Shown here: positions 4,367-50,945 of the stretch, piece after piece | How positions within the stretch are numbered: position 1 is the stretch's first letter | How the letters are laid out: each line of letters starts with the position of its first letter | Origin: Perkinsus chesapeaki ATCC PRA-425 | Lineage: Eukaryota; Protista; Perkinsozoa | Length of the DNA stretch: 64,000 bases | Direction of reading: 5' to 3' | NCBI GenBank assembly: GCA_013115145.1 | Contig: JAAPAO010000118.1 | Span: 1 to 64,000 of the forward strand | Made by a program: the position numbers and the translations under genes | Notes under the pieces: model-generated | Told to the model about the DNA's origin: nothing | What the model saw: the letters and a program-made list of their open reading frames with translations, nothing else | Databases searched by the model: none

Positions 4367-4388
4367 GTGAAGACTCTTCACTGAAGAG
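4367..4388. mobile_element. 22-bp excision-type footprint (perfect), 8-mer GTGAAGAG
   Basis: gtgaaga-ctcttcac-tgaagag. Confidence 0.75.
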
Positions 4389-4665
4389 CGCTCGGTGTTG
4401 GTATATGTCCGATATAATGCCTGTCGGCCTTGTCGAGATGGAATCTGCAATTTCTTCATTACTAGTATGTGGAATGCATTCTCTTCAATCTTGGGATTTT
4501 CGTGAAATCATCCGAGATTTTACTTCCTTACCAACTTGTTCAGTTAACCGGATGAATATATTCTAAAACTGTTGCGCCCAACTGTGGATGACGTCCACAA
4601 AAACGGTCTCTGCGGGCCCTAAACTCGGGTGTTGGTTCGAGTTTCGATGAGAAATACTCCCGGAA

Positions 4666-6624
4666 ATGGGTATGTCCGCTCTTGGACTTTCACGGTGGAA
4701 GTATCGTCATGTAGTCGTACGTCGCTCAGAAGTTGAGTGTGCTACCGTTGGTGATATTCCGTATAAGAATGCTCTCGGCCTCCCGAGAAGGTTACACTGT
4801 ACATCGGAAGAACTCCCTTGGCCTGGCGAAGCTCGCCATCTGTATTATTAGGTTCTTCATGGCCCTTACCCAGATTCATATCTTATATTGGTTCTGGTAG
4901 GAGGATCAGATTCACATGCGAATGCTCGGCAATTAGTTGGTGGCGCTAGTAATACCTCAACGATGACCTCCATAGCATCTTCGTTGCTTAGGCAGCTCCT
5001 TGCCTTTATTGGAAGTCACCGGTTGTCGAATAGATGGGGCCGTCTCGAAATCGACGGACGATATCCTCGCGCCCGTACAACTTTTCGCTCCAGTCCTCAC
5101 CAAGGACCACCAATGCAGCATTTGTCTCGACCCCTTATTGTAGGGACCTGTGTGTGTCATGTATCAACCTCGCGGGTATCTTGAAAGATACTCTCCGAGC
5201 GCAATCTCAACTGGAGGGCAAGCTGCATGCGGCGGAGGTGGAGTAGCTTTGACTATCCTCTGTGGGCACAGTTTTCATTGGAAGTGCCTATCCAAATGGT
5301 GCGATCGATCATGCCCAGTATGCCGCTTCCAGCAGTATCCTTCAAGGTAAGTTCGGACAACAAGGGATTCCGTCAGAAATTGGGAACGTCTAAATTAGGC
5401 TACCAGTGCTTCGAATAGTAGGGATCTGATGAAATCGTGCCCTCGGAAACCTTAGCAACGGAATGCTTGTCTGGCAGGTGCAGCAGCTGTGACGTGTGTG
5501 GAGAGGCTGATTCCATGAAATTAATGGTGTGTTTGGTGTGCGGCTTCATCGGATGTAAGTTGAGCAACGATGGTCATCGGTGAAATCATGACATCTCATC
5601 TCAGGTTGCGACATGGACGGGTATCCGAGCCTCCTAGGCCGTGACGAGGCGAACTCTGACAACCGGTACACCCACGCTTATGAGCATTTCCTGGAGTCAG
5701 ACCATGCCTTTGCGATGCAGGTAGCTTGGAGTCTACTTTTCACTTCGGAATATTCGCTCGTTGATGGCAGGTTTCGACCCAGTCTGTGTTTGATTTTTCC
5801 GAAGGCGATTTTGTCGGCATGAGTGGTCGTAACTCGGATGCAGACGGAGAAGATGCCAAAAGGGGTGAGAAGAGTAAAGGTGAGTTGAAGAGGCGTCTGG
5901 ATGGGTCACACTTGGGGCAGGGTCGAGGCAAAAGATCCATAGAGTTGCTAAGAAGATTCTCCAAGGCGATGAGGATGACCTCATGAGCGAGTTCAATGAA
6001 GTCTATACGACACTACAAGAGTCTCAACAGCAGCATTATGAGGAGATCTTTGAGCAGATCAGAAGTCGCAACCGAGAGAGGTAGGTAGAAGTACACCTTG
6101 CCAAGTGAGGTGCTGGAAAGTTACGCTGCTGCTACGGAAGAACGAGATGAAGTTTTGTCGAGGCTCTGTGATGCCCGGGATGAGCTCGATACTGTCGAAG
6201 ATGATCGGGCTCGGCTTGAGCTGGAACTGACAAATGTTAGCACTTCGCTGGAAAGGTGAGAAAATGCTCGTATAGGGCTAGTGCATTTTCAATCAGACTA
6301 CAACGATCGTGTGACGAGTTTGAAGGACAGAAGACTGTGCTTGAGGATGAGATAGCCGGCTTGAAGAAAGAACTTCAGCGTCGAACGATCGCTTCAACGG
6401 TATACAACAGACATCCAGTTGTTAAGGTGGAGCTCATTTGGCAGGTTCGAACAAAAAAACTTCATGACGAGAAGACCGACCTCCGGGAGCAGATGAAAGA
6501 TCTGAAGCAATATCTAAGAATGCGAGCTCAAGTTGATAAATCTGGCGCTACCGATGCTGACGTCCAAGGCAGTTTCGTTATCACTCAGAACGCTGGCCGG
6601 AATTCCAGGCGCAAGAAGCGGTGA
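4666..6624 (+). CDS. BRAP2: BRCA1-associated protein (BRAP2/IMP/ETP1)-like RING and ZnF-UBP E3 ligase, multi-exon, 5' end approximate
   Basis: RING half [23 protein letters not shown] (about 5260-5340); UBP zinc finger pieces C..CDVC...[12 protein letters not shown] and [15 protein letters not shown]; C-terminal coiled coil ending [13 protein letters not shown]...RRKKR*. Confidence 0.85.
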
Positions 6625-6690
6625 CTATTTTTTGTATTTCCTGTTCAACTTGCATACCACTTCACCTTTCACCACTTCATTTGTTGTGTT

Positions 6691-7253
6691 ATGAGTTCGC
6701 AGAAGGGGTTACTCGAAGACGGTCCTCTGCCGGAGCATTCAGATCACCCGAGTATGTGGCTCACATAGTTAGATCAGCAGCTGGTTTAGTACGCCGTCCC
6801 CACTACGAACACTTTAGCTCGAGTTAGTAGACCGATATGTGGTGACACTGGGCAACGTATCTTTGTAGCTCAACGACGCTAGAACAAGCTTTGACAGACT
6901 TTGGCCTATGGGCCGTGACAGCGGTGAAGGTATGTAGCAGCAGGATTGGTCGTGCAAATGCCGTACAGTGCGGCCCCTGTTGCAGTGACATTGCTAACGC
7001 CACAAACTTTCTCGAGCTTTCCGATGAAGTTTACGAGTAACTAAAGAGCTCGTAGTTGGCAATGTGCGGACAATATTGCGGTTCAACTACCATATCATCG
7101 CCTGCTGCGTTTGCGGGGTATATTGATGATTGTCGATTACAGGATTTGGACAAGCTATGTAACAGTGTAGAACTTGAGTTTTCCGCGGAGTCCACACGAG
7201 GAACTGAAGTGGACATCCATGTAACATCCACTCACGCCCGAGGACGAACCTAA
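6691..7253 (+). CDS. Small hypothetical multi-exon protein
   Basis: ATG at 6691, short GT-AG-bounded open segments and terminal ORF 7056-7253. Confidence 0.3.
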
Positions 7254-7475
7254 TGGATCTTTAAGATTCGGAATCTTGGATTCTGCGAGCTCACATGTGA
7301 AACATTGTTGACACAAAAATGAGCTTATATAAGTGAAGCGATAGAATCATACGGTGTGGTGAGAGCATCGTAGAATGATATAACGAAAGATATAATGGAT
7401 AACTCTCACTTTTATCAACTGTCATAAGCTAAGTCTTTTGTCATCATAATAATGATAATAATGAAGTATTACGAT

Positions 7476-7497
7476 ATGCGATTATCGCATTGCGATA
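7476..7497. mobile_element. 22-bp footprint (perfect), 8-mer ATGCGATA
   Basis: atgcgat-tatcgcat-tgcgata. Confidence 0.75.
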
Positions 7498-7702
7498 GTA
7501 TAGCGATCATTCAGCAACACAGTTGGTTGAATCAACCCCCTCCGGTACTCCTGAAACTTCCTTGGTTGTTGGGCAATAGGAGTATCTATATTCACAAATA
7601 TGTGAGGTACTCTCCAGTGGAGTGTAGAGTTCTCACTAGAACTACCAGCCATTTCTATAACGAGGGTCGCCTTTCCTTGGGCAGTAGAGGAGGGCCGCTC
7701 TT

Positions 7703-7724
7703 GCTTCAAGTTGAAGCCGTCAAC
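7703..7724. mobile_element. 22-bp footprint (1 mismatch), 8-mer GCTTCAAC
   Basis: gcttcaa-gttgaagc-cgtcaac. Confidence 0.65.
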
Positions 7725-8176
7725 CAAACTCTTCGTCCACATAGAGGAAGTTAAATCTAGGATTTCCACTTTCAGAGTAACTCGAGCTCTAGTTTTAGAG
7801 CTTTGTATCGCGTTTATAAATTATTATAATGGCTTCAAATGCTACAGGGTGCCCCCCCGGGATTTAGTAACGAGTGTATCATGGATAATGTATATGTTAT
7901 TGGTATCACGGATACGGTATCATATACGGTACGGATAGCGTACCGGGATACCATTCCAAAGCTCTCGCCGAGATCTTTCTAATGCCGTACGAGTCACTCC
8001 GATATTCGTACTGTACATCGAGCAATGGTCAAACGAAAAAATGTCTACATGGGGAAATGTGCTACCGGATTTGCAATTTCGCTATCTTTCGTTGTCTAAA
8101 GAGCCAAATGAACCAGATGCAACATACAGATATCATGTAGTAACAGGCCACTAGTAACAGTATATAGTAGTAACTT

Positions 8177-8419
8177 ATGACTACTATACAGGCTACAGCC
8201 TGTATTTCATCTATCATCGTTTACTCGATAGGGAGTGCGGTATTCTATGCTAATGACTGCATCGTAACGATGCTGAAAGCAGAAGGTTCTCTTTCGTTAT
8301 CACTAGTTGGCCTAGAGCTACCACTGATAACTTTCGATTTGCGGTGGGATTTCCTAGCTTCCATCGCCCAAGATGAGCCTGTTGTGTTTTGTGAGCTGTA
8401 TCATCTGCGTATAGGTTAG
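8177..8419 (+). other. Duplicated short coding-like segment (paralog at 12745-13004)
   Basis: TACISSIIVYSIGSAVFYANDCIVTMLK...DEPVVFCELYHLRIG* aligns to SACVASIIIHLIGKVVFPANDCVVIMLK...DDPVVFCKLYHLRIG*, with several synonymous differences in the + frame. Confidence 0.45.
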
Positions 8420-8774
8420 AGGGATGTAATTCGCGACAAGTAGTTATTCCACACTCTGGCCAGTGTCACTGGCGAACTCAGAAAACGCTCGAAAAACGGT
8501 GCTATATCTGAATTAGGCTCTCCGGAGTTAAGCCAGTAAGGCTATCCGATCCATTCCACAAGTGTCTGAAGTATAATTCCCTGAAGCGCCTCTTGCACAT
8601 CGACTCGCACAAACCTGCCCGAGCGATTTGTTCTCGTACCCAAAAGAAGGACGAACGGGAAACATGACCGATTTGGTCGCTTACGAAGGAGCAGTGCATG
8701 TGAGCCACCGTGGGCCACAAGACACCCACAGGCCCAGTGGCTAAACCGTGAGAGTAGGAGCGAAATGAATAACG

Positions 8775-8880
8775 CGGAGGCTCAGGCCGCTTGAGCTAGG
8801 CGGGCCTCGTTTAGGCCCGCTGCACCCCTACCCCACTTGAGAGACGCGAGGCATGCGTACGGGCATAGCTGCCCGCTCCG
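8775..8880. other. GC-rich four-hairpin structured element of unknown function
   Basis: Closing stem cggag/ctccg encloses four hairpins of 6, 8, 5 and 6 bp. Confidence 0.4.
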
Positions 8881-9144
8881 ATGAGGGATGTGATGACTAC
8901 AGTTGGACATACAATATGTTATGAGTCATTAACAATGACATCGGAGAATGTGACACTTCGCTCTGTCTACTCCATCATGTAGGCGCTACACCAACTCGCC
9001 CAATGAAGTACTTTTTGAACTTGCTACATTGTTGAGGGTCAACTTCATTACGGAACGCATTCTCAGGAAGTCATGTTTCTTAAGATTTGCGAACAACTAG
9101 GGCGTGTTATTCGAGAACTCTCCTAGGTATGTGTTATATATGAG

Positions 9145-9166
9145 GAGTAAAATTTACTCAGCAAAT
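9145..9166. mobile_element. 22-bp footprint (1 mismatch), 8-mer GAGTAAAT
   Basis: gagtaaa-atttactc-agcaaat. Confidence 0.65.
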
Positions 9167-9445
9167 ACTTACTAATATTATACTGCCCGAATATACTCCC
9201 TAACCGCTATTGCGGCATATAACTAAGTTGAATACCCAAAACTGCACGCAAAGCTCACTTCTTCGCTGCAGTTTTAAGCTGTGACTGCTGAGGATGTTAT
9301 TGTGTTGCTATTATGATGTATAATAACGACGAAACTATTCATAGGGAACATATGCGGAGTACCCATAGGCTGATCCGCCTCAGTTGCTCCACAATCTTAA
9401 GAGAAGGGTTGCTCACAATATGTTGTGCAGTGTATATCATAACAT

Positions 9446-10546
9446 ATGTGGGCTGCTCTTCACATTCTCTCACTTTTTATCCCCATTCATTCTACCAACA
9501 GGTTCTATAAGTGGGTCGATTACCCTTGGGTGTTCAAGGAAGGCCCCTTCTGCCGCGACGGAACTCTCTGCCCAGAGAGTCAGAACTACACTTGGGACTT
9601 TTACTTTGACAAGCTCCTCGATATCGGTGGAGAAAGTTTTGTGCTTGGTGATTACAATATCAAAAACAGCGAATTCGTGAATTATAGCGGCTTCGAATGG
9701 GATATGTGTGGTTTCGATGATTTAAAGCGAAGAGTTGAGGATAAAAATGGTACGGTTTTATGCTCAGTGGAGCTTTACGATAGAGCTTTCAACAAGACCG
9801 TCTTCCTTGAGAGCGCCACGGGCTTCCTCAAGAAGTATCCAGTGAACGGTTTCATGATATCTGTATTCAAAGAATCTGAACCGAATGTGATGCTAGAAGT
9901 CATCCAGAGTATTCAGGAGCTGAATCTTACCGCGGCACTGTAGTAAGTGTGGAACTGGTCACGGAGAGTACTAAATGATCGTTGTATGGCAGTTTCGGCT
10001 CGACAGAGTGGCATGTCGCAAAGCAGTGCGGGCTGGCTGCGACCGCAGATCTCATTTTTGTTGGCTTGGAGCCAAAATATGATGATCAAATAGTGACCTT
10101 TAACACTGATGCATTCGCCGAGGAAGCTATCAAGAATGCCAGCCTAACCGGTGCGAAACCTGAAAATATGGTTTTAGCGGTAAGCTCACCGCTTAGTCGC
10201 TCTCGGATACAGCTACTGAGGGCTCTTCAATGAGTCATTGCTTCTTCAGATACCACTGATCGCAAGAGCAGTTCATCCCGCCTCTGACATGGGCTACTCC
10301 AACATGATCTACGACTTCAACGCGGATCCTAAGGGAAACGGATCGGTTATCTCCAGCTCTAATAACACATATTATTTCTTCTCTCAAACCCGTGCCGGTG
10401 ATAAGTTAGGATTGGTCACAGAACATGGTCTACATGGCGTCATGCTCGCATCTGGATATTTATTAACGGCAGACCTCTATCCATGGGATGAATCATCGCT
10501 CTTCTATGCCTTAGCTACGAAAAGTGCAAAGCCAGTCCAAAGTTGA
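9446..10546 (+). CDS. Secreted GH18 chitinase-like protein lacking the catalytic motif (3 exons)
   Basis: Signal peptide MWAALHILSLFIPIHS; FLKKYPVNGFMIS occupies the position of FLRKYGFDGIDIDWE; C-terminal YFFSQTRAGDKLGLVTEHGLHGVML resembles the GH18 last strand; introns at about 9943 and 10181. Confidence 0.7.
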
Positions 10547-11039
10547 TGATCAGGTACAGTGTTACCTGATCGGACAAGATGGAATTCCTTATCAGGCCTG
10601 CTCTTTGCGCCATCAGATCTGGATCTACTTCACCCGTCCGATAAGTATCGATTAAAATGGAGTACACTTATTATTGTAGCTTGAGCGATTACTCCAACAG
10701 TTGTACGTATGTACATTGTTATACTCGTCCGCCTACCGCCTGTTGCGCTCCTAGTACCCGGATGGCTAGCCGAACTGTTATCATTGATTATCACGGTGAT
10801 ATCCATGTGAAAACACCTGTGGGCATCCTCATTATCATTAGCTGATGTCAGACGCGGATCACACCGTAATGGTACAGCCCTCCCCAATGAATAGAATATT
10901 CCGTTTTTAACGATTTCTCGTCTGCTATTGCGTATGACGGTCGTAGCGGACTAGCTGAAACCGCAAATCTCAGTTTTGTGTAATTGGTGCGTAATTATGA
11001 TGATTAAATATCATTAAGAGAGTTAAAATAATTCTCTTA

Positions 11040-11141
11040 TGATGACCTTTAACACCGAATCGGTGTCACCGATGCATTCGCCGAGGAAGCTATCACCAAT
11101 GCCAGCCTAGCTGGTGCGAAACCTATAAATATGATTTTAGC
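11040..11141 (+). pseudogene. Isolated ~100-bp fragment of GH18-like exon 2
   Basis: Close match to 10094-10180 (FNTDAFAEEAI.NASL.GAKP.NM.LA), interrupted by a 14-bp insertion. Confidence 0.75.
11052..11073. mobile_element. 22-bp footprint (perfect), 8-mer ACACCGAT, with paralogous empty site at 12259-12266
   Basis: acaccga-atcggtgt-caccgat. Confidence 0.85.
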
Positions 11142-11594
11142 GATGCTAATGTCAGCTGCTGGCAGTAAACCCTCGGAGTTAAGAGACCAAATTAGCTCGC
11201 CGGCGATCCTTCACAGCTGAGCTACCGCTCCCTCGTTTCCCGGTGGAGCTGTCTCCCCTCCTCCATTGAGACGACGTTTAGGACCGAGGCGCCGGATGTG
11301 ACATCTCTGGCCACAACTATAGCGAGCCGCTTGCTGCAAGCGAGAGAATTATACCTTGGACGATCCCACAGTGGGAGTCCCACTCCGGTTGGCATGACCT
11401 TTGCCTTTTCCTCGATGACCTTTGCCTTTACCCGTTTAGCTGCGGCGCTGCCCATCATAGCGTCTGCGTGCTGGCTGTGCTCGTCCGAACGAGCAGCTTT
11501 CAACTGATCACGGTCAGTCTCAGTCAACTAGTCAAGGCTGGTTGCTGTAAGGCATCAGAGCATGTGACTAGTAGCATCACCTTTGTTACGACAT

Positions 11595-12687
11595 ATGTGG
11601 ACTACTCTTCACATTCTCCTACTTCTCATTCCCCTTCAAGCTACGAGCGAGTTCTACAAATGGATTTCCTTCCCTTGGGCATACAGAGTAGGCCCCTGGT
11701 GCTTCAACCAAACCCTTTGCCCACACAAACAAAGTTACACTTGGGACTCTTACTTTGACCAACTGCTGGATATCGGTGCCAAGAACTTTGTACTCGGTGG
11801 TTACGAGGTTAGGAACAGTACAATCGTACAAGACTCCATACTATACCCTGAATGGAATGTATCTGGATTCATGGATCCACAACGACGGGTTACCGACAGG
11901 AATGGGACGACATTATGCGCATTGACAGTTTTCGACGAACCATTCGACAAGGCCCACTTCCTTGAGAGCACTAAAGCCTTCCTCAAGAAGTACTCTGTGA
12001 ACGGTTTTCAAATATCAGCATTCACCTGGTCGAAGGAAAGCATCGATGCTGTACTAGGTATCATTCGGACTATCCAGGAGCTGAATCTCACCGCGGCATT
12101 CCAGTAAGTGTCAAGTTTCTCGTTAATGTCGGCAGCCCTCTATGGCAGTTTTGGAACGACGAGTTGGGAGGTCGCGCATGAAAGAGGAATACCCGCAGCT
12201 GCAGACCTCAATTTTGTTGGCTTGTGGCCTACGTATAAGGGGCAAGTCGTGACCTTCAACACCGATGCATTTGCCGAGGAAGCGATCAAAAATGCCACCC
12301 TAGCAGGTGCTAAACCCGAAAACACAATCCTATCGGTGAGTTACCCATCCCGTTGACTGCGATTTCCGACTGGTCACTATTCGCTTCATCCATCTGTTTC
12401 TGTAGGTGCCCCTCGTCGCAAAAGCTACATATCCCACCTCAGACATGGGTTACTCTAGCATGATTTATGACTTCCATGCTGATCCTAAAGGCAATGGCTC
12501 GGTTATATTCAGTCCTGGTAATGGATATTATTTCTTCTCTCAAACCCGTGCCGTTGATAAGTTAAGATTAGTAAAACAACATGGTCTACATGGCGTCATG
12601 CTCGAGTCCGGATACGACATGTTGGAGGACCTCTATCCATGGGATGAGTCATCGCTCTTCTATGCCTTGGCTACAAAGAGTGTGTAA
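11595..12687 (+). CDS. Secreted GH18 chitinase-like protein lacking the catalytic motif, paralog 2 (3 exons)
   Basis: Signal peptide MWTTLHILLLLIPLQA; FLKKYSVNGFQIS; same intron positions and C-terminus (DLYPWDESSLFYALATKS) as paralog 1. Confidence 0.7.
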
Positions 12688-12744
12688 CACAACGGTCAAA
12701 GTTCGACCATTAAGTCACTTAGAAATAGTCATTAAAAGCAGGAT

Positions 12745-13004
12745 TCAGCCTGTGTTGCATCTATTATTATACACTTGATAGGGAAAGTGGTATTTCCTGC
12801 TAATGACTGCGTCGTAATAATGCTAAAGCTAGGAGGACATTCCCTCCCTTTCCGGTCTCTTTCGTCTTCCCTATTATACATAGGGACCCTGTGGTAGGGT
12901 ATCTCTGATACCCTATTAATATGCGGTGGCTTTGTTCTTGTTTCCATCGCACCAGTGATGATCCGGTTGTGTTTTGTAAGCTCTATCATCTGCGTATAGG
13001 ATAG
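12745..13004 (+). other. Second copy of the duplicated coding-like segment at 8177-8419
   Basis: Two conserved blocks separated by a diverged middle that contains a stop codon. Confidence 0.45.
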
Positions 13005-13360
13005 AGGAAACGTTGTCCGCGTCAAAACACGGGGCGGCCAGCGGAAAGAAAAACAGCGATTCTTTCTTCCATCGTGTTTTCCATTCGTGCATGAAGTAAA
13101 ACGGAAAATCATCGGAGCTTTGCTGAGGTAGCTTTGGTGTCATAAATCTTGTCCATCATGCTGATCGATCCTTGCACTATATAGCTCACACAATTCCGGT
13201 CTTTGGTAGACAGTCTATCGCGCAATTGTCGTACCACAGTATTACAATTATACTATTACTAGCTTCCTTTACTCGTGATATTCTACCCATTACTCACTTT
13301 TCTCTATTAACCTATCTCGTTAAGTATGAGCCTGATCTATAATCGTTGAGTCACGACTAT

Positions 13361-13382
13361 GCTATCCGGGATAGCCTATCCC
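13361..13382. mobile_element. 22-bp footprint (perfect), 8-mer GCTATCCC
   Basis: gctatcc-gggatagc-ctatccc. Confidence 0.75.
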
Positions 13383-13801
13383 TAACGAGATAGTGCATCC
13401 TGTCGACTCGACTCCATAGTAGTTGCAGTTGATTTTCTTATAGTTCCCCGACTATGATCGAACAGTTGATCGTGCTGGTGGTCCAATACCAACAGTTGAA
13501 GTGTTGTCCTCTGTAGGTGTGCAAGGCAAAGTTGTGCATTTATTTCACCTTGAGTCGAGGTTCACGGCAAGTGCCAATACGAATATCCTTCAAGACCATC
13601 ATCTCTTCTTGAAATTCCCGGAAAACAGGCGTTTCATTTGATGGAAGTTTTGATTAAAGACTGGGACAAACTGAAGGTGCGTACATTTATTACAAGGAAG
13701 ACATTACCCATGTTTAACATGCACAGTTAACAAGCAGTATTACACAAGGTGTTACAGTAAGAGCCAAGAAAGCTCATAGTCAAATCGCTACAGCCAAAAG
13801 G

Positions 13802-16780: not shown

Positions 16781-17794
16781 TCATGCCCAGTGTCGTCTGT
16801 ATTTCACTAGGGATACGGACGGCAGTCCCTGCTTTAGAGAGGACTCCTCTCTAAAGCAGGGACTCCTCTCAGAGGAGTTCTTGCTAAGCATGAGTAAGTT
16901 GAATCCGATACAGTAAACAATACAGTGAACGGTACGGTGGTCTATTTCCATACGGTGCCACATGAGCTGATCACCTAAAATAGGCATATCCTTCTCACTT
17001 TGGATAGAGTCCTCTGGAGTATTCATCATAATTACAACGGGCGTGGAGGAGCCACACAGTATCAAGGGAGCTGTCCTCGGGTCTCGATAAGTTGAAGTAC
17101 TGTTCACCGACGCTCACGCCGTTGCATTTATAGAAGGAGCCCTGAAGGGAAGTGATGTAAAAAGGGCGTCGATATAGACCAATATTTATGTTATGAAATC
17201 TACCGGATTTGAAGGCGCCTCGGTTGTAGTGGTTGACGCTTTAGTTGTAGGAGTAGTGTGTCGACTACAAAGCTCGTCCACCACTTGCTCAGGGGTGAGT
17301 TCTATGCTCAATCCGAAGGACTCGAAGATTCCCCGACAGTCTGCCTTCCCTGACTGAGCGATGTTGATGCCATCCGTTGGTAGGAGACCCTCGGCGTTAC
17401 GAGACCAAATCCTACAAAGAACGATCGTGGAGCATGACTTCATTTAGCGATAAGAACTCACTTGAATTTAGGCTCTATATTGCGGCACTTTCCCGCCACC
17501 TGTACACGATAGGAGCCCTAGCAGGACGAGAAATTAAGAAACAACAGTGGTATTGAATGACAATAACCTACTTCTCCAGAGCGGGTACTAGTGATACCGA
17601 AGAATATGGTCTCGCTGGTCACTGACAGCAAACACATCGTTCGAGTGGGCAGCTGCTTTGTGCGTATCTGAGAAATATCATCTAGCGATAACATTGGTGA
17701 CCTATGAATGCATACCTCATCCAACCAAGTCTTTTTTACTGTCGTACCTGCCGTCGTCGTCGTTGTGGTGGTGGTGGTCGTCGTCGTCGTCGTT

Positions 17795-18154: not shown

Positions 18155-18176
18155 GTGGTGAGTCACCACTGGTGAC
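18155..18176. mobile_element. 22-bp footprint (perfect), 8-mer GTGGTGAC
   Basis: gtggtga-gtcaccac-tggtgac. Confidence 0.75.
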
Positions 18177-18316: not shown

Positions 18317-18338
18317 CATGTGACTCACATGATGTGCG
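18317..18338. mobile_element. 22-bp footprint (1 mismatch), 8-mer CATGTGAG
   Basis: catgtga-ctcacatg-atgtgcg. Confidence 0.65.
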
Positions 18339-26459: not shown

Positions 26460-26481
26460 AGCTGAGGTTCAGCTGCTGAAC
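26460..26481. mobile_element. 22-bp footprint (1 mismatch), 8-mer AGCTGAAC
   Basis: agctgag-gttcagct-gctgaac. Confidence 0.65.
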
Positions 26482-29845: not shown

Positions 29846-33424
<3,579 letters not shown>

Positions 33425-39753: not shown

Positions 39754-39826
39754 TAGTCCCGGCGGGGGTCGAACCCGCGGCCTACGGCTCATAAGACCGT
39801 CGCTCTAACCACTGAGCTACAGGACC
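39754..39826 (-). tRNA. tRNA-Ile(UAU), intronless
   Basis: Full cloverleaf GGTCCTG-TA-GCTCAGTGGTTAGAGC-G-ACGGT CTTATGA GCCGT-AGGCC-GCGGG TTCGACC CCCGC-CGGGACT-A. Confidence 0.95.
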
Positions 39827-40129
39827 GCTCGATAACATACGGCTCAGATTCCTTTGGCTTTTCTTAAACTGATTAAACTACGAAGTTACTCCTTATTCCG
39901 CACACCGTCACTGGACAAATGTTCCTCTGCGCTGTCCAATTTGCACTTTGCCTCGCTGCAGTTTTGTGTTGCCCCTTGCCTAATACTGCGGTCGGCGCTG
40001 CCACGACTGGCCGACTCGTTTCATCGCAGAGTCTCTACAAAACTAACTGCATCATCTATCTCGCTCTTGGATAGAGCTCAGCCACTGATAGACACCCCCG
40101 GACTACTGGGAATATCTCAAGGACGCATT

Positions 40130-42468
40130 ATGAGTACCGCAGCTGCCACGAAAGTATGTCGGTAGAGATCGTTGAGTCGTTCATTTGATTCTAGAAGACA
40201 TTCTGGAACAAAGTATTCCATAAACGTTGGTTCATTCGGTAGGGTGCCACTTCTGCATTGGACGCTACAGGGGAAATTCAAGGACTGTTCAATAAAAATA
40301 CTTATACTGGATGAGTGGTAAAATACTCATAGTCATGGGAACGGTGAGATGGCGTTAGTTCTGCTGTCACTAGCCGTTTCGGTAGTAGCAGTACACCGCC
40401 ATAGCTTCCTATTATTGGCCCAATACTGCTGGCAAAGCTTTTCCCATCGTATCTGCCTCAGACCTCATCACCGATGGTGATCTCCGAAGACGGTGAGAAT
40501 GTGGTGATACTAATGAGAGTTAACGGGAAAAGGCTTACCTTCAATCGTAACCCTTCCGACACTATGGACCAGGTGAGAGAGGTAGGAGGGCCTGAGACGG
40601 CACACTGAGCTCTGTAAGGTCCTAAGGCGGATGCAGCTCAGTGTAGAGAAGGCGTACGGTATTGGTGATAACCGTAAAGGTAAGAAAAGAAAAGGTGCTC
40701 CATCGACAGATGAACAACAACAGGAGCATGATAAGAAGGTAAGGATGATCTAATCGAGGGGTTCGGAAAGTTGTGACCGACTAGGTGATGATTCGATGGT
40801 CCGATGGCGAGGGAAAGGAGCTCGCATCAACCGATGGCGCAACTAATATGTGCACCTTGGCAGAGCTTAGTCGTTCTACTAAGGCAATTACTGTCAACGA
40901 TCACGTAGAAGATCATTTCCAGTTCACTGTATACAAGGCTGATTAGGTATACTCTGTCTTTCTCAACCCGCCTATGGTCAAGTCGGTAGCGCTGAAATAT
41001 TTCCTTTTTGCAGAGTATCCAGTCATACCTCTGGTAGAATGCAGCAACACAACTCCTGATGAGCTGGTGTATGAATACAGAACTGCTGACTCAGAGGACA
41101 TTGTCCACTCCGGCAGAATATTCACTCCCAATGACGATCTGGTTGGGAAGAAGCTGCGAGTGACAGCCTATCACAACCAATGCCGAGACTTGCCGCAGGC
41201 CGAGTCCGATGCAAGCAAGGCCATCCGCGCCTCCCCGAGCAAGGGAACGTTCCGTGATCGTCGGCTCCCTCACCCTTTGGCGATCACTCCCCCAAATCGC
41301 ATTAGAGTTGCCAGTTTCAACGTGCTTGCTCAGCGGTATGTTAGAACGCCTCTGGCAACTAAAGTGATGTACCAGAATGTTAAGAACTGCCGAGAAGTCC
41401 TCGAATGGGAGTATCGATGTCCACTACTGATGAGGGAGCTGATGGACGTAAAGGCAGACATCTTCTCATTCCAAGAGGCTGAACCGAGATTCGTTGAGAC
41501 CGTTCATGAGGTGACGCCCGAGTACACTGTTCGGTACGTCGAGAAGAGCGGCCATAAGGGCGAAGGCTGCGCCATCGCCTACAGAAATGATCGCTTTGAA
41601 ATGCTTGATGAGACTACATTGGACTTGGCATCCGATGGAATTAAATCTGAGCTCAGCGAGGTGCAACTTGCCGAACTCCAAAAGAAGTGGGGGGACGTCA
41701 ACCTGTTTAATGACGTCTTTGACAACCTCGGCACCGTTGGCCAGGTCGTTGTGCTACGCGACCGATGCGATACGAATAAGATATTTGTCGTTGGTAACAC
41801 ACATTTGTTCTTCCATCGAAACGCGGCTCATGTTAGACTGTTGCAAGCTCATATGTTGGCCATGGCAGTGAAGCATGAACTGGATAGGTTTCAAGGGGCG
41901 AACGCCTTCATCTGTGGCGACTTCAACTCCTTCCCTGACAGCGGTGTGGTCGAATACCTGAGCTCTGGCGAGGCACCGGCGAACCACAAGGACTGGTTTT
42001 ATGGTCCTCAATTTAAATGGGACTCCCAGGATTGTGCAGACCTAGACGAGGCCGTGGATGAATCGGCGTACCATGACGTGTTGGTGGATGAACCGGAATG
42101 GGGGGAAGGCGATGAGCTGTTTGGACTGGCGGGGGAAGTTAAGCGAATGAAGCCTGAGAAGGTTGATATGAATCTGGGCATTGAGCTGCATCACGGTATA
42201 GATGGCTTACAGCATACAGAGTTGCCGCAGTACACTAACGCCGTTTGCAACTTCAAGTGAGGCGAATGCGTCATGAAAGTAGATTTGAATATTTCCTCTT
42301 TTCAGAGCCGTGCTGGACTACATTTTCTACACGCCCCATCTCACTCCTACATGGACCCTTCCCGGCCTCACTGATGATGACATCAAAGCCTGCAATGGCG
42401 GCTTGCCGTACAAGTGTTACGGTAGCGATCACGTTATGATTGCGACAGAGTTTGAAGTGTCGAATTGA
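40130..42468 (+). CDS. PDE12: 2',5'-phosphodiesterase 12 / CCR4-nocturnin-family EEP nuclease; 5' end uncertain
   Basis: RVASFNVLAQ, ADIFSFQE, VVGNTHLFF, ICGDFNS, VLDYIF, GSDHVMIA; N-terminal MRVNGKRLTFNR resembles PDE12. Confidence 0.85.
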
Positions 42469-43055
42469 ATAAGCCATCATTTGCTGAGTGTTTCCGTAGA
42501 CCGCACTAGTTGTGTAGCCAGTAGTACTTCGGGCAGTCATAACGAAACGACAGAGACATGGGCTGATACCGGAACGGGAAAGCCTAGGTGGAGTGTACCA
42601 CATATCAATGGGCAACAACAATCTTAGACAGTTCTCTGATCGGTGTAGCTGTGGAAACTAAAGGAGGCCGGGGGCTAGTCGATCGAACCACGATCTAGTT
42701 AAGGCTACACTTAATCGCGAAGGGGAAGCGAGTCGGCTCGGTGAGAATGATTAACTTGACTCCTGTCTGTAATATATTGCTCTCAAATGGCCGAAGGAGA
42801 GTGCACTATTTCCTGAAGCGATGGTTGCGAAGCTTCCTATCGGCGAACGATCGTATCTTCATGATCATACTAGACTCAACATTAGTGCGGTTAGTGCTCG
42901 AACGATGCGGTTGATAGTGGTAGACAGACTTTTTGTTAATATGTTTTGTACGGACAAAGTATATCGAGATTTAAGCACAAAGGCGAGAATAAAGGATACT
43001 ATAGGACTTGCCAGGTCAGGGCACAAAGTTGGACGCTGGGTTGCTAAATGCCTCA

Positions 43056-43457
43056 TTAATGCTTCTTGAATTTAATGCCAAGAGCTTCAATCCAATCTGA
43101 ACCATGGGAGAGGCCCGACCAGTCGTCGATGTCCGTGCAGAGCAGCCTAGCAAACGTCTGCAGCTCAGCATTGCCTTTGTCAAGATTGAGAGAATGCCAA
43201 GGCCAGCCACCTCTGGAATACTCCACATTGTGCCATGAAAACTCATAATCAGAAGCAAACAGACGAGTGGCAAATATACTCACAGTACCAGTTCTACCAT
43301 CTTCGTCAGATCTGGTCACGTTCCAACGCATATACAAGTCATCATTGTAGCCAGTGTAAAGACCAGTTTCTGGCATATTACAAGATCTTACAAGATAAGC
43401 GGCCCAGATGGCCGTAACGTATACCCTGTAGATGACGCTTCTGCTCAATAGGGACAT
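43056..43457 (-). CDS. Small hypothetical secreted protein (133 aa)
   Basis: Single ORF with an N-terminal hydrophobic stretch. Confidence 0.5.
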   Translation of the reverse strand: MSLLSRSVIYRVYVTAIWAAYLVRSCNMPETGLYTGYNDDLYMRWNVTRSDEDGRTGTVSIFATRLFASDYEFSWHNVEYSRGGWPWHSLNLDKGNAELQTFARLLCTDIDDWSGLSHGSDWIEALGIKFKKH

Positions 43458-43805
43458 GGGTTGGACTTTACTAAAGAACTGAGAATAACAATTAATGCTC
43501 GACGGTGGCATACGATGGTACGATGGCAAATCGAGGAATTGCTATGATTGCGGAAGGGTCGCTGCCATCTCGATATTTACGACTGTCAGTAATTAGCACG
43601 CCAGTTGTTGAAACTTTACTGCAGTTACTATATTGGTTACGAATTACTACTACTTGTCACTGGTGCAAGAGTGACAAAAATAAGGGATCGGAGTGTCCGA
43701 TCCGGATACCCTGCCTAACGGGTGAAGCTTAAAGAAGTTCTAGAATACTCTGCGCCATATGGACTGTAAGGCATCTGGTGGATGGAAGTACAATAAGGTA
43801 GCCGC

Positions 43806-43827
43806 ATTGCAGACTGCAATTTTCAGT
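43806..43827. mobile_element. 22-bp footprint (1 mismatch), 8-mer ATTGCAGT
   Basis: attgcag-actgcaat-tttcagt. Confidence 0.65.
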
Positions 43828-44355
43828 GGCAACTTAGGTTAAATGTACGTTCGTTCATAAGGAGTGTACGGGAACGTGAGATTGCCACTATAACCATGTT
43901 ATACACTTCAGGGGCCCGCTGGAACTCACTCATGCAATAGATGTTACCCTGGTAGGGAAGAGACCTTAGCTCTGTGACGTGACACGTACAGGACTCTGGA
44001 TCTATAAAACAATTCGATACGTTGAAACTTCAGCTTATTAACAGAACGCAACACGATTCATGCGTTGAAGTATTCATCTTGGCTACACCAGAACTTCAAC
44101 AGAGCAGCTCGTGTTACATGAGCCCAGGCAGCCTGGGATGTATTCCATTGTCACCGGGACACTATATAACTGTCGCCGTGACACCGACAGCGGTGTCTTC
44201 GTAATCATTTCAAGTCTTGCGACTCGTGGGAATTTCCATGTGAAATTTTACCTCATGAAATTGACATTGTTAGTTTGGCAACCCTAACGCACTCAAGCAC
44301 GACACCTGGGGAATACAAGCACTCCCAGGATTCTAATCGCAGCTACGCAAGTCTA

Positions 44356-44395
44356 GCACCGCCAGGGTATCACGGTGCCGTGATACCGCACCGCC
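44356..44395. mobile_element. 24-bp near-palindromic insert flanked by an 8-bp direct repeat (GCACCGCC)
   Basis: gcaccgcc-agggtatcacgg-tg-ccgtgatacc-gcaccgcc. Confidence 0.5.
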
Positions 44396-44508
44396 TTCGC
44401 TACCCTAAGTTTTCTGAGACAATCGGCACTTGCAAAGTTCGGTCAAACGCACCTTCGAGTTGGTGATTGATTTCAGCTCTGGTTTATTAAGCACCTCTGC
44501 GTTGATTT

Positions 44509-45597
44509 ATGGGTATACGGATTTCGGACGTCCTCTATCTCCTTCAACAGCTATCCCCTCTTTTCTGGGCTGCCGATTTGTATAGAATTCCTATTTCCCG
44601 TGAGGACGTGTTTCCGGGTGATACATGGGGGCAGCTCGTAGCCCCGATTAAGGTCGGTAACTACGACACCTACGCCCTTATCGATACTGGAACGCCACTC
44701 CTTTTCTTCATCTGGAGGCATTGGTTCGAAGGTGTTCAGCCCGGCGGTTGCAAGTTGTACGTTTTTGGCTGCTATGAATGTTCCCCTGATGTTTGCACCA
44801 AAGGCGATGAAACTACCTTCAAGTATGATAATGACTATACGGTAACTCTATTCAGGCAGCAGGATACCCTTAGCCTCGGAGCTTCGAGTGTGCCGCATAT
44901 TTCTTTCGGGTTGGTAACTGGCGTTAGCAAGCGACCATGGGCATCTCTCGGACTTGCTCCGCAGACTCCACAAACACACCCGTATCGTACGTTAATAGAC
45001 CAGTTGGCGCAGCGGCGGTTGATAAATGAGACCACTTTTTCTATTTACCTCAAGGACAACGAGCATCCAAAGGGTGAGCTGTTGCTGGGAGGGAGTGATC
45101 CAGCTAAATATCGCGCCCCTTTGAAGTACATCCAAGTTTCTGGATATGGTGTGTCGAATAATAAATGGTCGGTTGAGCTACGTAATTTGAAAATCGGTCA
45201 GACAAGGGGGATCATAATTACCCCCCAAAATGTCGATGTGGATACAGGCACCAACCATCTAATCATGCCCGACTGGTTCAAGCGAAATGTGCTAAATCTC
45301 TTGAGGAACTCAGGACAAAAGCCGGTGACTATTTCCGAGGACGCTGAGGGATATCTGGTAAAATGCTCCGACACACCTAACCTGCCTTCAATGACATACA
45401 TTTTCGTTGGACCACAGGGCCAGGAAGTTCCCCTCAGAATTCCCCCGACTAGCTTATTTCGCAAGTCAGGCGATGACGTCTGCCGTTTGCTCCTATACTT
45501 TACCGATGACTGGCTTCTGGGAATAAATGCTTTTATTGGCCACTATTTCTCTTTTCACTGGACAAAGAGACTAATCGGATTCTCCGAGGCGGTGTAG
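44509..45597 (+). CDS. Secreted pepsin-like (A1) aspartic protease, intronless
   Basis: Two catalytic motifs ALIDTGT and VDVDTGT, ELLLGG, and a LLGINAF end motif. Confidence 0.93.
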   Translation: MGIRISDVLYLLQQLSPLFWAADLYRIPISREDVFPGDTWGQLVAPIKVGNYDTYALIDTGTPLLFFIWRHWFEGVQPGGCKLYVFGCYECSPDVCTKGDETTFKYDNDYTVTLFRQQDTLSLGASSVPHISFGLVTGVSKRPWASLGLAPQTPQTHPYRTLIDQLAQRRLINETTFSIYLKDNEHPKGELLLGGSDPAKYRAPLKYIQVSGYGVSNNKWSVELRNLKIGQTRGIIITPQNVDVDTGTNHLIMPDWFKRNVLNLLRNSGQKPVTISEDAEGYLVKCSDTPNLPSMTYIFVGPQGQEVPLRIPPTSLFRKSGDDVCRLLLYFTDDWLLGINAFIGHYFSFHWTKRLIGFSEAV

Positions 45598-46240
45598 AAA
45601 ACAGCAGAACACTTGTACACATGGAGCAATTGATTCTAGGCTATATAACGTAAGGTGACTGATTGATGTCACATTTCTTTACTGAGTAGATGTTGATCAC
45701 ATGTGTCTGAGAGACTTACATTTCTTTACAGAGTAGGTCTACACCGGGGTAGCTACCTCAGAATGCTGGCAGAGTAGCATTTATCGTAGCCCGAAGTATC
45801 ACGAGGGTCTTGATCTCTTAGTTTCACTCAGACTTGCGTTAGTTACCTATTATGAGACGGTTCTAGCTCCGGTCTTTCATACAGAGTCTTGATTTAAGAT
45901 CTACTTTGAGAAATTTATCACTTTTTCGGGTTCCGTTTCTGAGTGCCGATGAGCCGCGCTTTGAAGCATCCCAAGCCGGAGGGTTTTGGTGGGAGATACA
46001 ACACGCTAGACTGCGCCAACGTCCCAAGCCGCACGCAACTTGCCAGTGTAAAGAGGACCAGAAGAACTGGGCCCAGCGCGGAAGAACGAGCTGCCGAAGC
46101 TTGTAGGCTGGGTAGTTCTCGTTCACGTTCCTTCTCTATTGCTTCCCTTTTCCTTTTCTTAGGCCACCCGCCTACTTGGAAGGACATGATAATGATGAAA
46201 AGAGCGGAGATTTCCATCTAAAATGTAGTTAGTGACTAGG

Positions 46241-46273
46241 AGTGACTGAGTCACTCCGGAGTCACTGTGACTC
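46241..46273. mobile_element. Variant footprint with an extra inverted copy, 8-mer AGTGACTC
   Basis: agtgact-gagtcact-ccg-gagtcact-gtgactc. Confidence 0.55.
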
Positions 46274-46459
46274 TATTGCGGTGTCACATTACTGCTCATT
46301 TCACTTTCGTGCCTCGAATAACTCTACAGCATTTATTGGAGGTACTTGAAACTAATATCGGACGCATGTAACGTGTTAAAAGTAACCAAGAGGAGCATCA
46401 TACCATCAATGCAGAGAGTAAACGAAAATATGAATCAGATGATTGATCGGCCGTGAGAG

Positions 46460-49400
46460 TCAATCCAGACTGTCGACAAGTCCTGCTCCGAAAACTCCTC
46501 GTCGCACAGGTTGTCGCCTCGTTGCAAAGCGGGATCCCATATCTCCAATGTTGCTCATAGTCCTCGATCGTAGGTATCTTTTACTCTTTGATACTGAACC
46601 ACCACCGTTACTCATGAAAGTAGCAGCGCTGCGGCTTGTGGCGTCGGCTGCAGCATTTGACTGGGAAAAGTCGTTAGTCCTCATCAGGGCTCGTGGATCC
46701 TCGGCACTCAGCCAGCGGCTGCCCATACCGCCGTTACAATCTTGGATGAATCTGAGGCATCAAAAAGCCTCATGATTGGCGGGAGTACGAGGCTACCTGT
46801 CAGATGCACCCTCCGAACACTCTTCTCTTACTTCGTCGTCTTTGTGCAGCACGGAGTCGAGCCCATCTCTATACGCGCCGAGACGAATGCTCCAGGTTGA
46901 CTCCTGGGCTCCACCGTCAGCAGCCTCAGCAGTTGCCGCTGTAGACCACACACGACTGAGAACAGGCTATGAGTTCGAGTATCAGGCAATGGGACAACCG
47001 ATACTTCTCACAAACGGCTTACTCACCTGAGAGTCGGGCGTGGTGCATGACTCGCTGGGGATGCCTCGTTCATTCCAGCTTGGAACGGAGTAGAGAAGTC
47101 GACCTGAGGTGGAGTCCGTATCACAATCGCTTTATCAGATTGCGAATATTAGTCAAATAAATAAGGATCTAGGGTGGCACCTGGTCTCTGGACGTATAAA
47201 AGGAAGAGGTAGATTTCCCAATGGTTGACTCGTAGTCGAACAATGCGATGGAGTCGAGGTTGCTGACCTGCAAAGGCTAATGTCATTTATAACAAATAAC
47301 ACTTTTTACATCAACATTGTAGACCCCAGTGTTGCCAACTCGCTGAACTATGCTCATCCAGCAAAGGCTGATATCTGTCCCAGGTGGCAGCCACGTCACG
47401 TCAGTCAACGGCCAAGACTTTTTTGCACTGATCTCGTGTCCTGGGCGACAATTGCTGTGCGACTTTCCAAACTACTCATGGCATACCTGTTGTAGCGTCC
47501 GTGAACTCTAATGTGCAGACAAGTTCGAAACTGCTTGCTGCATCCTTAATGCCAGTCGAGATACACGACGAACGCGTTGACGATGCTGCGTATGAGCGAT
47601 GGGAGGAGTGTCGCCTGGATCCAAGTATGTAGAAACATAGCTATCGATAGCGTACTGTGGCGTCACTGGATGGTCATGAGTAGACGTCGGTGTTATGGGA
47701 CTCGGCCAGATGTTAGCAGCAGGCATAGCAGGCTGTGGTGGAGGATTAGGAGGAGGAGCCACCGTGCTGCTCACTTGACGCGTCATCTTGTAACTATCGC
47801 TTGAGGATTGCAAACGATAACAGCGAGATGCCTCACTGTTCGCTAAAGTGTCTAACCCAAAAATGTTGTCCTACTGTAGAGGTACTTGTGGGACAGTTAA
47901 GAGTCCCACCGATGACGCTTTGGTCCCCAGGGGTGCCTATAAGGCGAAGGATATAAACGTGAGTGTATGTCATGAGAAGATACCAGTATCAATGCCAACA
48001 TCTTCGTCGTTGTCATCCTTCAGAACGTCTGCTTGGTGCAGCAGTGGCAGGCGTTCCACTGGGATGTAGGCACACACCTCCACGGGAAGGCTCATGAATT
48101 CCAGCGGTATTGACGTATCGAAATAATGCAGCTCCTGAGTAAATGTGATTGAATACAACAAACTACTGACGACGAGTGCTTCAATGTTGAGTGATGACAT
48201 GTTTAGAAATACAAAAACTTGATATTGTAATTTGGCAACTGTGGCAATGTGACGGAGCTGCAGTTTGAAATCGATAGTAATGATAATCGATCGCAGAGGT
48301 CGCCCAAGGTGTTGGGCACGGACTAATAGATCCGATGTTTGCAAATTGCAATCGATTGCTCGTCTCATATCGCAGTGGGTCGGTTTAACTGACCTGTACT
48401 GTAGGACAACTCCAGTTGTCTTCCGATGCAGGATGATGCTCAATAAGGAAAAGTCGCATGGATACGTGGAAAAAGTGACGGTGAAAAACCTGCGGAGAAC
48501 TGTCGTGCTTTAGACGTATGTATTGGTTACATTGACGAATCTAAAACACAGCCTCACGTGCTCCCTATCCGCGACAACGCTGTTGGTATGAAGCTGTGTC
48601 GGTCTATCAGGACCAACCCTGGATAAAAGGCCGAGGGTGTCTTTGACGAGAAAAGAACAACTTACCCACCAAGAACGCTGAAGGAGTCCTCGCAAGGAGG
48701 AATGGCAAACAAGCGCGTCGAGAACGCACATGCTAGATCTCGGGAACCTGAAGCAAGATTGTATTGGGCAAATGTACTGAAGCGTACTGTCTAAAGTAAA
48801 CTTGGCAAATACAATACCAGTCAGGGCCGTATGTTGCAAGAGACCCAATATAGAGATAATAGTTACCCCCACATTGGTGGCGAAACATAAAGGCTCTTTA
48901 CCACCGTAGCCTATAGTAAAAAGAGTTTGAACCTAGAAAGGAGACTGGCACGAGTTCGTGCTTTGTAGGGGATAAGGCTGAGGACATGGTATTGATAAAT
49001 AAATGTGACATATAATTCAACTGAAGGGACCTACCACAAAAAAGTAATAGTCCGCTAGATTGTGGACGTCTTTGGTGCAGACAAAGTCGCCGTCGAACGA
49101 TCGAAGACAGACCGCGTAAAGAAGTATGACGATTATGTATCTATTAGAGATACTAGATAGCACGGGTTCGAATCCTGGTTGGGGCAGGCGTACATAATAA
49201 TGACTAGGAAAAATATAGTATGCCATTTCAGTCGAATTATTGAGGGAAATGTATCGTAAAGCCAGTTCAAATAAACCTGAATGAACCCCCTCCCGTTTAA
49301 AGGAGACTACCAGGCGTCGTTTGTGTTACCTTTGTTATATACGGTATTAAACGATGGACATTGAGGTTGCCTCTTGTGGAGATTAAACTACGTCGGTCAC

Positions 49401-50303
49401 CTTGTACGAAAAGCTTAAGATTTCTCCTCTCCATGCTGTGCTGAGATGTCCCTGTCCTGAATGGAGATGACACAATTACCGTGCTACACTGCTCAAGATA
49501 TTCCGGAGCACAAAATGAAGAATCCGTCTGAGCAGGAAATCTATCGGAGAGCACTGGTTATAGAACCAATATGGATTAGAGGGCCACAGAGTGCACTAAG
49601 TTAAGCTCCATGCGACTGAGTCACAGATTCGGGAAAACGCAGAGTTGCTGCAGCAGCAATGCTGCTCACTCAGCAAGGTCTTCTACGGGGCATATGGGTA
49701 TTGGTGTAGCCTTCAATGAAGATACTTCGGACGATAAATGAGCAGCGGGTAGGGGGAAAGTCTGTTGGTGCCGCAGCTGCGGTCGGCCAATTCGTTCTGT
49801 GCTGCATGTCTCTGCATGACTCGAGCACGGGTCAGCTTCTTGAACTGACCTTGACCGCTGAGAAGACGACGCAATAAACGTCCCTGAGTCACCATGTACG
49901 CACTCACCGGTGGCGCCACGTTATGCCCGGTCGATCCTTGCTTGGAGGCCCTGGCTGGCATGAAGGGCGACGTAGTTGCATATGATGGTGGTCGCCAAGC
50001 TATGGGAGAGCTCCCCGGAGTGCTATCCTTATTAGCTTGCTGTGCACTCGATGCCGTGCTGCTGGCCAGAGGGATGGAATCTGCAACAACCTTCGGCAAA
50101 TGAGAATGCGTAGCCTTACCGCCTCCAGCATCACTCGAAGATATCGTTTCTACTCCACCGCACTCTAAATCCTCCTCATCTTCCTCTTTCAACAATGGCA
50201 AGACTAATGGCGGCTGTTCTCGTGGTAAACGGTTAGATATTGGCGGTGACGGTCGACATGATAGTCGAGTATGTGGACCGCCGCCGATCAATGGTGATGT
50301 CAT
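46460..50303 (-). CDS. Inward-rectifier K+ channel (Kir/IRK-like) with long low-complexity termini, multi-exon
   Basis: Spliced pore YYFFV/VQTLFTIGYGG (filter at 48903-48917), then TM2 TIISILGLLQHTALTGIVFAKF; downstream cytoplasmic-domain-like exons (VRLCFRFVNV). Confidence 0.8.
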
Positions 50304-50329
50304 GCTAAGTAGACTACAGATTCAAGCAA

Positions 50330-50742
50330 TTGCGTTTTACAGGAAGCTGGCATCAGTTGCTGGTCGATGATTTTCATCATCGTCAAAGGGAATCAGCTAG
50401 CTTTTCAAGTTCACTGTCACAAGGGGAATTATACCTGCACGCATGCACGAGCTCCTACAGCATCGAGCAAACCGCGTTCACGGAATATCACCAGTGGTAC
50501 TTCATCACGGTAGTGCAATTGCCAGAACCATTCGAAGTATCAGATATCATATCTATTTCCGTGAAGCTCATGCTATGACTTCTAGAATACTCTACATGGT
50601 CTATAATGCACTTGGTGGATGAGAGTACAATACGATAGCCGCCTCGCAGTACTAACGTTGATAATGTGTTCGTCTCGTTTATGAGAAGCAGATCGAATCG
50701 CGAGAGCAGTATAGACTCCGCCTGGTATCGCTTACGTAACAC
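50330..50742 (-). mobile_element. Decayed fragment resembling the APE endonuclease of a non-LTR retrotransposon
   Basis: LLSRFDLLLINETN...GGYRIV resembles D.ilLqET...GY; later YNSP; contains stops and no RT nearby. Confidence 0.4.
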
Positions 50743-50745
50743 GGG

Positions 50746-50767
50746 GATTAGGCCCTAATCATTAGGG
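50746..50767. mobile_element. 22-bp footprint (perfect), 8-mer GATTAGGG
   Basis: gattagg-ccctaatc-attaggg. Confidence 0.75.
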
Positions 50768-50875
50768 CGGTAGAGAGGGAACCCTAGGTGAGAGCGGACC
50801 AAAAGTCTCGCCCCGTCACCTCACGGCGACCCCGAGACTCAGCAACATTTTCATTCCATCAAACGCGCCTACGGG

Positions 50876-50897
50876 CTGGTGGGCCACCAGTGGTGGC
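50876..50897. mobile_element. 22-bp footprint (perfect), 8-mer CTGGTGGC
   Basis: ctggtgg-gccaccag-tggtggc. Confidence 0.75.
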
Positions 50898-50923
50898 TGA
50901 GCTCGGCTCTCGTTTATTGAGTA

Positions 50924-50945
50924 CCTCTGCCGCAGAGGCTCTGCG
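50924..50945. mobile_element. 22-bp footprint (perfect), 8-mer CCTCTGCG, with paralogous empty site at 44494-44501
   Basis: cctctgc-cgcagagg-ctctgcg. Confidence 0.85.

Follow-up and report, generated by a model that had tools for sequence, protein, structure and literature searches.

Excision footprints of the hAT elements Ac/Ds, Tam3, and Hermes combine an 8-bp target duplication with loss of the element-adjacent base, palindromic (P) nucleotides, and the use of microhomology. Ac/Ds footprints comprise deletions as well as palindromic insertions, the latter having the complement of the element-adjacent base at their centre, with palindrome arms of up to 20 nt in budding yeast and use of microhomology in yeast and Arabidopsis (PMC5873905, PMC1978519), and Hermes makes 8-bp duplications with a preference for nTnnnnAn (PMC10368747). 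The shared traits have counterparts in a 22-base scar (7 + 8 + 7 bases) that recurs in a stretch of 64,000 nucleotides from the oyster and clam parasite genus Perkinsus (P. chesapeaki ATCC PRA-425, assembly GCA_013115145.1, contig JAAPAO010000118.1, positions 1 to 64,000; hereafter the window). However, hAT footprints vary widely in plants, yeast, and Candida (128 events in Candida gave 28 different ones), and their P tracts are mostly short. The Perkinsus scars, by contrast, represent one dominant product, to which each side contributes a complete 8-nt P tail and in which the net gain is 14 nt, and they form a genome-wide fossil series instead of footprints at a reporter locus.

Hairpin-capped flanks that are opened off-centre and thereby yield palindromic additions are also known from V(D)J coding joints (RAG) and from Transib. 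In these systems, however, the nick lies exactly at the border and produces even palindromes, the duplications measure 5 bp, and the coding joints are diversified, unlike the uniform Perkinsus scars. The Mutator-like element (MULE) Muta1 forms flank hairpins and duplicates 8-9 bp (PMC5499845), but more than 90% of its excisions in yeast are precise, a 7 + 8 + 7 product is not described for it, and the 9-bp analogue of the scar is absent from the window.

A 22-base scar derived from 8-bp sites

The scars follow the grammar X1-7 + rc(X1-8) + X2-8, where X is a word of k = 8 bases and rc its reverse complement, so that an 8-base site becomes a 22-mer and 14 bases are added per scar. A script scan that sorted the matches by number of mismatches, with first-order Markov shuffles of the window as chance controls, found 11 perfect scars (0 in the shuffles), 7 with one mismatch (0), 7 with two (0.15), and 25 with three (5.2). 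By these counts, about 45 scars are present per 64 kb, and they form a decay series. Analogue grammars gave one match in the window for k = 5 and none for k = 6, 7, and 9-13. When the spacing of the palindrome centres was left free and the eight duplication constraints were kept, only spacing 7 was enriched (13 matches versus 0.6); among all values tried (k from 5 to 13, spacings from 1 to 40), enrichment was confined to k = 8 and spacing 7. Offsets of direct 7-mer repeats were uninformative, as they were swamped by coding tandem repeats. Hairpins with a 7-bp stem and a 1-nt loop number 35 in the window versus 3.2 expected; about 7 of them are solo hairpins outside scars, for which an excess over the 3.2 expected for all such hairpins is not clear. 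Substitutions in the decayed scars affect each of the three arms, and the mismatch classes are near-flat in size. Both features fit long-continued, steady production followed by neutral decay. No scar (0 of 27) lies inside an open reading frame (ORF) of at least 600 nt, though such ORFs make up 18% of the window.

An earlier sequence-only reading of this DNA had listed nine perfect and five one-mismatch sites between 4367 and 50945. All of them were recovered by the script scan at the positions given, but the list lacked the perfect scars at 49645 and 51910 and the one-mismatch scars at 11321 and 11363, and its extent was too narrow, as scars run to about 52737 and include seven two-mismatch sites. 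The k-analogues and shuffled controls that it had proposed as a check gave the outcome reported above. The 22-mer pattern is thus confirmed as real and is stronger than had been claimed.

The 22-mer arose from a single 8-mer, as paralogs in the window carry the plain 8-mer at scar positions. These paralogs stem from old internal duplications, including a segment at 43738-45467 (copy A) that is repeated at 50580-51910 (copy B) with 82% identity. Clean 14-nt gaps in paralogs lie opposite four scars (50876, 50924, 7703, and 11052, the last against two separate paralogs), and a net 14-nt difference to the paralog exists at scars 43806 and 51358; the paralog alignment is ambiguous at 51910 and 12879. 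At scar 50924, for example, copy A contains CCTCTGCG once, versus CCTCTGC CGCAGAGG CTCTGCG in copy B. Scar 43806 belongs to copy A and is lacking in copy B, whereas scars 50876, 50924, and 51358 are found in copy B, and both copies must therefore have gained scars after the duplication. An ancestral 22-mer, which would have contradicted the sequence-only reading, is ruled out by these comparisons. The duplicated segment includes an aspartyl protease (Pfam Asp), which is intact in copy A (44509-45597). Its counterpart in copy B (50953-52050, 82% identical over about 1 kb) is a pseudogene, as indicated by a premature TAG stop at 51355-51357 directly before scar 51358 and by that scar and a further one at 51910. 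The first 134 codons of copy B are annotated as a gene in the assembly.

The scars were also traced in Logan contigs, which are built straight from reads by a different assembler and in which minor variants are dropped. The intervals 47001-53000 and 7401-13395 are covered by contigs from the run that is probably the source and, for a second study, from three or four runs. The 14 scars in these intervals that have no more than two mismatches show zero differences in the contigs. Neither a 14-nt indel nor a heterozygous empty allele was seen over the two intervals in these contigs, which by construction omit minor variants. A loose end at 50939 matches copy A in its letters. Depth rises to 2-5 times at 13254-13298, 10873-10930, and 8001-8126, where numerous distinct Logan contigs stack; these are thus multi-copy sequences of 40-125 nt. 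Two assembly gaps interrupt the window, one (14744-14841) within a 27-bp tandem array and the other (20050-20148) within a duplicated segment (18840-19291 matching 19887-20235). No scar comes within 1.3 kb of either gap, and each scar consists of 22 contiguous read bases. Therefore, the gaps leave the finding unaffected. The tandem array itself (14631-15090; CTAGTGGTAGGGTTATTATAATATGGT and variants) spans the first gap, and related units follow 1 kb downstream at 15918-16016; the second gap falls in a 96-98% identical repeat of 18840-19291 and holds 99 N versus approximately 202 nt in the first copy.

Scars were found in other Perkinsus DNA as well. Two loci of P. marinus (GCA_000006405.1; 42 kb) contain 5 perfect and 3 one-mismatch scars, and another P. 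chesapeaki contig, from the window's own assembly, contains 3 one-mismatch scars; one gene-dense 21-kb locus of P. olseni had none. P. marinus and P. chesapeaki are only partly syntenic around malate/lactate dehydrogenase (MDH), and the intergenic DNA was judged too diverged for a comparison site by site. The MDH genes of the window are tandem paralogs (61319-62284 and 62833-63801, 72.6% identical at the DNA level). The pair is kept in P. marinus (positions 10001-12419 of locus L001), genes further out differ between the species, and the closest homologue of the MDH at 61319-62284 is from P. marinus ATCC 50983 (89% identity).

Probable excision through hairpin-capped flanks

Each 22-mer is probably the footprint of a cut-and-paste transposon that duplicated 8 bp of target and left by hAT-type excision, after which the broken tails annealed with each other. 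We have good confidence that the scars are hairpin-excision footprints of an element making 8-bp duplications, and less in the family name hAT. In the proposed mechanism, the element would lie between two copies of X1-8, and the transposase would nick one nucleotide into each flank. The 3'-OH of the flank would then attack the opposite strand at the element border, leaving both flanks hairpin-capped, with the complements of the last (X8) and the first (X1) duplicated bases as tips. With primes denoting complements, the left cap would read ...X1-7-X8'-X7'..X1'... and the right cap ...X8'..X2'-X1-X2-8.... If host nucleases open or resect these hairpins 8 nt or more from the tip, the 3' tail on the left would carry X8'..X1', which is rc(X1-8), and the 3' tail on the right X1..X8, and the two would be perfectly complementary. 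Annealing of the tails, trimming of the flaps, and ligation would yield X1-7 + rc(X1-8) + X2-8 and a net gain of 14 nt. Since any opening 8 nt or more from the tip would converge on this one product, the mechanism would explain the uniformity of the scars. The sequence-only reading had assumed hairpins opened about 8 nt back, a precise distance that is not required, because any opening or resection of at least 8 nt followed by annealing and flap trimming suffices. More tentatively, hairpin-capped breaks in Perkinsus might nearly all be repaired through deep opening or resection and annealing of 8-nt tails, with end joining at the tips as a minor route.

Two hallmarks of hAT excision can be recognized in the scars. 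The outer arms come from one 8-mer, which is present singly in the paralogs and for which only k = 8 is enriched, as expected of an 8-bp target duplication, and the palindromes are centred on the complement of the presumed element-adjacent base. Non-canonical footprints share this geometry. A variant scan for a pair of odd palindromes, one with its centre on X8' and one on X1', with the 8-bp duplication kept and the arm lengths left free, found three such footprints (two in the window and one in P. marinus) with longer palindrome arms, of 9-28 nt (one stem measures 8 bp; Table 1), and none in shuffles. The palindrome centres thus lie at X8' and X1' in every canonical scar and in the three variants. 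Two flank hairpins with a 1-nt offset predict exactly such fixed centres with other arm lengths, and the variants match this prediction. The canonical 7 + 8 + 7 product accounts for about 85% of the recognizable perfect footprints. The filler AGTGC of the P. marinus variant recurs 25 nt upstream (cAGTGCttc; region 6971-7006) and could be a templated insertion of the polymerase theta type, or a chance match. The hairpin part of the hAT interpretation offered by the sequence-only reading is supported by the derived gain of 14 nt at an 8-bp site, the specificity for k = 8, the flank-hairpin geometry, and the variants, whereas its family assignment goes beyond what these data establish; we infer the transposon itself, its family, and the repair by microhomology annealing from the structure of the scars.

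Table 1. Scars, variant footprints, and the reference copy for empty sites; positions refer to the window unless stated otherwise.
Feature	Positions	Strand	X	Source and remarks
Perfect scar	4367..4388		GTGAAGAG	script scan
Perfect scar	7476..7497		ATGCGATA	script scan; unchanged in Logan contigs
Perfect scar	11052..11073		ACACCGAT	plain 8-mer in two paralogs (~10094-10179, ~12250-12316); clean 14-nt gap versus both
Perfect scar	13361..13382		GCTATCCC	script scan; Logan contigs
Perfect scar	18155..18176		GTGGTGAC	script scan
Perfect scar	31899..31920		ATCTCCAC	script scan
Perfect scar	49645..49666		TTGCTGCT	script scan; Logan contigs
Perfect scar	50746..50767		GATTAGGG	script scan; Logan contigs
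Perfect scar	50876..50897		CTGGTGGC	site once in copy A (~44460); clean 14-nt gap
Perfect scar	50924..50945		CCTCTGCG	8-mer once in copy A (44487-44494); clean 14-nt gap
Perfect scar	51910..51931		CCAACGGT	inside aspartyl-protease pseudogene; alignment to copy A ambiguous
One-mismatch scar	7703..7724		GCTTCAAC	paralog at ~11700 empty; clean 14-nt gap
One-mismatch scar	9145..9166		GAGTAAAT	script scan
One-mismatch scar	11321..11342		AGCAAGCG	script scan
One-mismatch scar	11363..11384		ATCCCACT	script scan
One-mismatch scar	18317..18338		CATGTGAG	script scan
One-mismatch scar	26460..26481		AGCTGAAC	script scan
One-mismatch scar	43806..43827		ATTGCAGT	paralog 50600-50690 net 14 nt shorter
Two-mismatch scar	3551..3572			mismatch scan
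Two-mismatch scar	4817..4838			mismatch scan
Two-mismatch scar	7263..7284			mismatch scan
Two-mismatch scar	12879..12900			mismatch scan; paralog alignment ambiguous
Two-mismatch scar	13239..13260			mismatch scan
Two-mismatch scar	51358..51379			in aspartyl-protease pseudogene; copy A net 14 nt shorter
Two-mismatch scar	52716..52737			mismatch scan
Non-canonical footprint	16824..16878		GAGAGGAG	20-bp-stem palindrome on X8' (16844), 8-bp-stem palindrome on X1' (16870); tails joined via 3-nt overlap ACT
Non-canonical footprint	46239..46273		AGTGACTC	palindromes centred at 46248 and 46266; one untemplated G between tails
Non-canonical footprint	P. marinus L001 6986-7062		CTCCTTTT	28-nt right arm, 5-nt filler
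Copy A, intact aspartyl-protease gene and upstream DNA	44380..45600	+		empty sites for scars 50876, 50924, and 51358

Several results weigh against excision of a hAT element as the source of the scars. A search for donors with an exact 8-bp duplication and terminal inverted repeats (10/12 or 9/10), which the sequence-only reading had suggested as a check, found no such element in the window and four further Perkinsus loci, together a small sample of about 150 kb. Its one match, in locus L003 of P. olseni, lies inside an MDH gene and was judged to be due to chance. No hAT Pfam domain occurs among the called genes of the fetched Perkinsus loci. A full, element-bearing state was not seen at any scar locus; the states seen between paralogs were empty and scar. 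The target preference has the same direction as in Hermes, but the effect is weak. For its 14 sites, the sequence-only reading had correctly counted 14 slots of 28 with T at position 2 or A at position 7; in a set of 38 sites drawn from three Perkinsus assemblies, the share drops to 29 of 76 (38% versus 26% background). T2 and A7 still are the commonest bases at positions 2 and 7 in these 38 sites, and T1 and A8 are depleted. Short hAT-type footprints with a centre spacing of 1-6 are not enriched in the window, and the repair outcome therefore would differ from that in every described host. Moreover, Dada and Merlin, and not hAT, are on record for P. marinus in the searched literature (PMC3706591, PMC8101967). 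A literature search on hAT elements and end-joining genes of Perkinsus yielded nothing relevant, and no published description of these scars was found in the searched literature.

Alternative sources of the footprint

The same footprint chemistry could have been carried out by a non-hAT element of a different DDE superfamily with 8-bp duplications and flank hairpins. Examples would be Mutator-like elements such as Muta1 (8-9 bp), Merlin-like elements (8-9 bp), and undescribed relatives of Dada, hAT, or P. We consider such a donor unlikely, although flank hairpins are formed by MULE transposases (PMC5499845), Merlin remnants and Dada elements are recorded from P. marinus (PMC8101967, PMC3706591), and no hAT element was verified in the DNA examined. 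MULEs make duplications of 9-11 bp, sometimes 8 bp, and the analogue grammars for k = 9, 10, and 11 gave 0 matches, including those expected with 9-10-bp duplications; the values that would suit Dada, with duplications of 6-7 bp (PMC3706591, PMC8101967), were equally empty (k = 6 and 7). Odd palindromes on the complement of the adjacent base are a described hallmark of hAT excision (PMC5873905, PMC1978519), and Muta1 excisions in yeast are mostly precise (PMC5499845).

An origin without any transposon is less likely still. It is known that small inverted duplications can result from short template-switch mutations, and fold-back copying by a polymerase at stalled forks, or a host nuclease making offset nicks and hairpins at an 8-bp site, would not call for the donor element that was missing from the ~150 kb searched. 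However, template switching gives no reason for exactly 8 nt, and the grammars for other k are nearly empty. In addition, two hairpins that each hold the same 8 bp cannot, by derivation, come from one unduplicated site, and a prior duplication of the 8-mer is therefore needed. The variants with 20- and 28-nt arms also still keep the 8-bp duplication. Finally, an assembly or sequencing artefact, for which one might cite the gaps of the draft assembly and the great regularity of the pattern, is barely conceivable and was rejected, because the scars were recovered in independent contig builds based on reads of two studies, occur in a different species and assembly (P. marinus), form a graded series with 1-3 substitutions, and avoid long ORFs.

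Further features of the window and implications

Other features of the window include an ORF of 428 amino acids (40974-42260) with an endonuclease/exonuclease/phosphatase domain (E=1.5e-07), which, judged by its predicted domain, may encode either a host enzyme or a non-LTR (long terminal repeat) retroelement endonuclease. Two tRNA genes are located on the minus strand, tRNA-Ile(TAT) at 39754-39826 and tRNA-Gln(TTG) at 56988-57059, and a perfect 25-bp tandem repeat of 2.5 copies (AGATACTTTATAATGATACCAGTCA) is found at 33124-33186.

The present analysis adds the test for paralogous empty sites, the variant footprints, the P. marinus loci, the check at the level of reads, and the tail-annealing argument. 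As each scar adds 14 nt, it shifts the reading frame where it lands in a gene, and gene predictors and aligners should account for such insertions. Past cut-and-paste activity normally is invisible, as it leaves little trace, whereas a uniform scar can be recognized, counted, and dated by its decay. If hairpin-capped breaks in Perkinsus are indeed channelled almost entirely into the deep-opening and annealing route, every imprecise excision would leave the same datable 22-bp fossil, and tens of thousands of scars across the genus would be the work of a few hyperactive elements that are rare or now extinct. Scars would then form at approximately 0.4% of the rate of substitutions per site (11 perfect scars x 22 sites / 63.8 kb, assuming steady state and neutrality). 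The scars would provide a countable record of transposition, from which transposon traffic in this protist, a parasite of oysters and clams, could be measured directly. They also would be a natural readout of an unusual hairpin-repair pathway and would show how a lineage near the apicomplexans and dinoflagellates mends hairpin-capped breaks.

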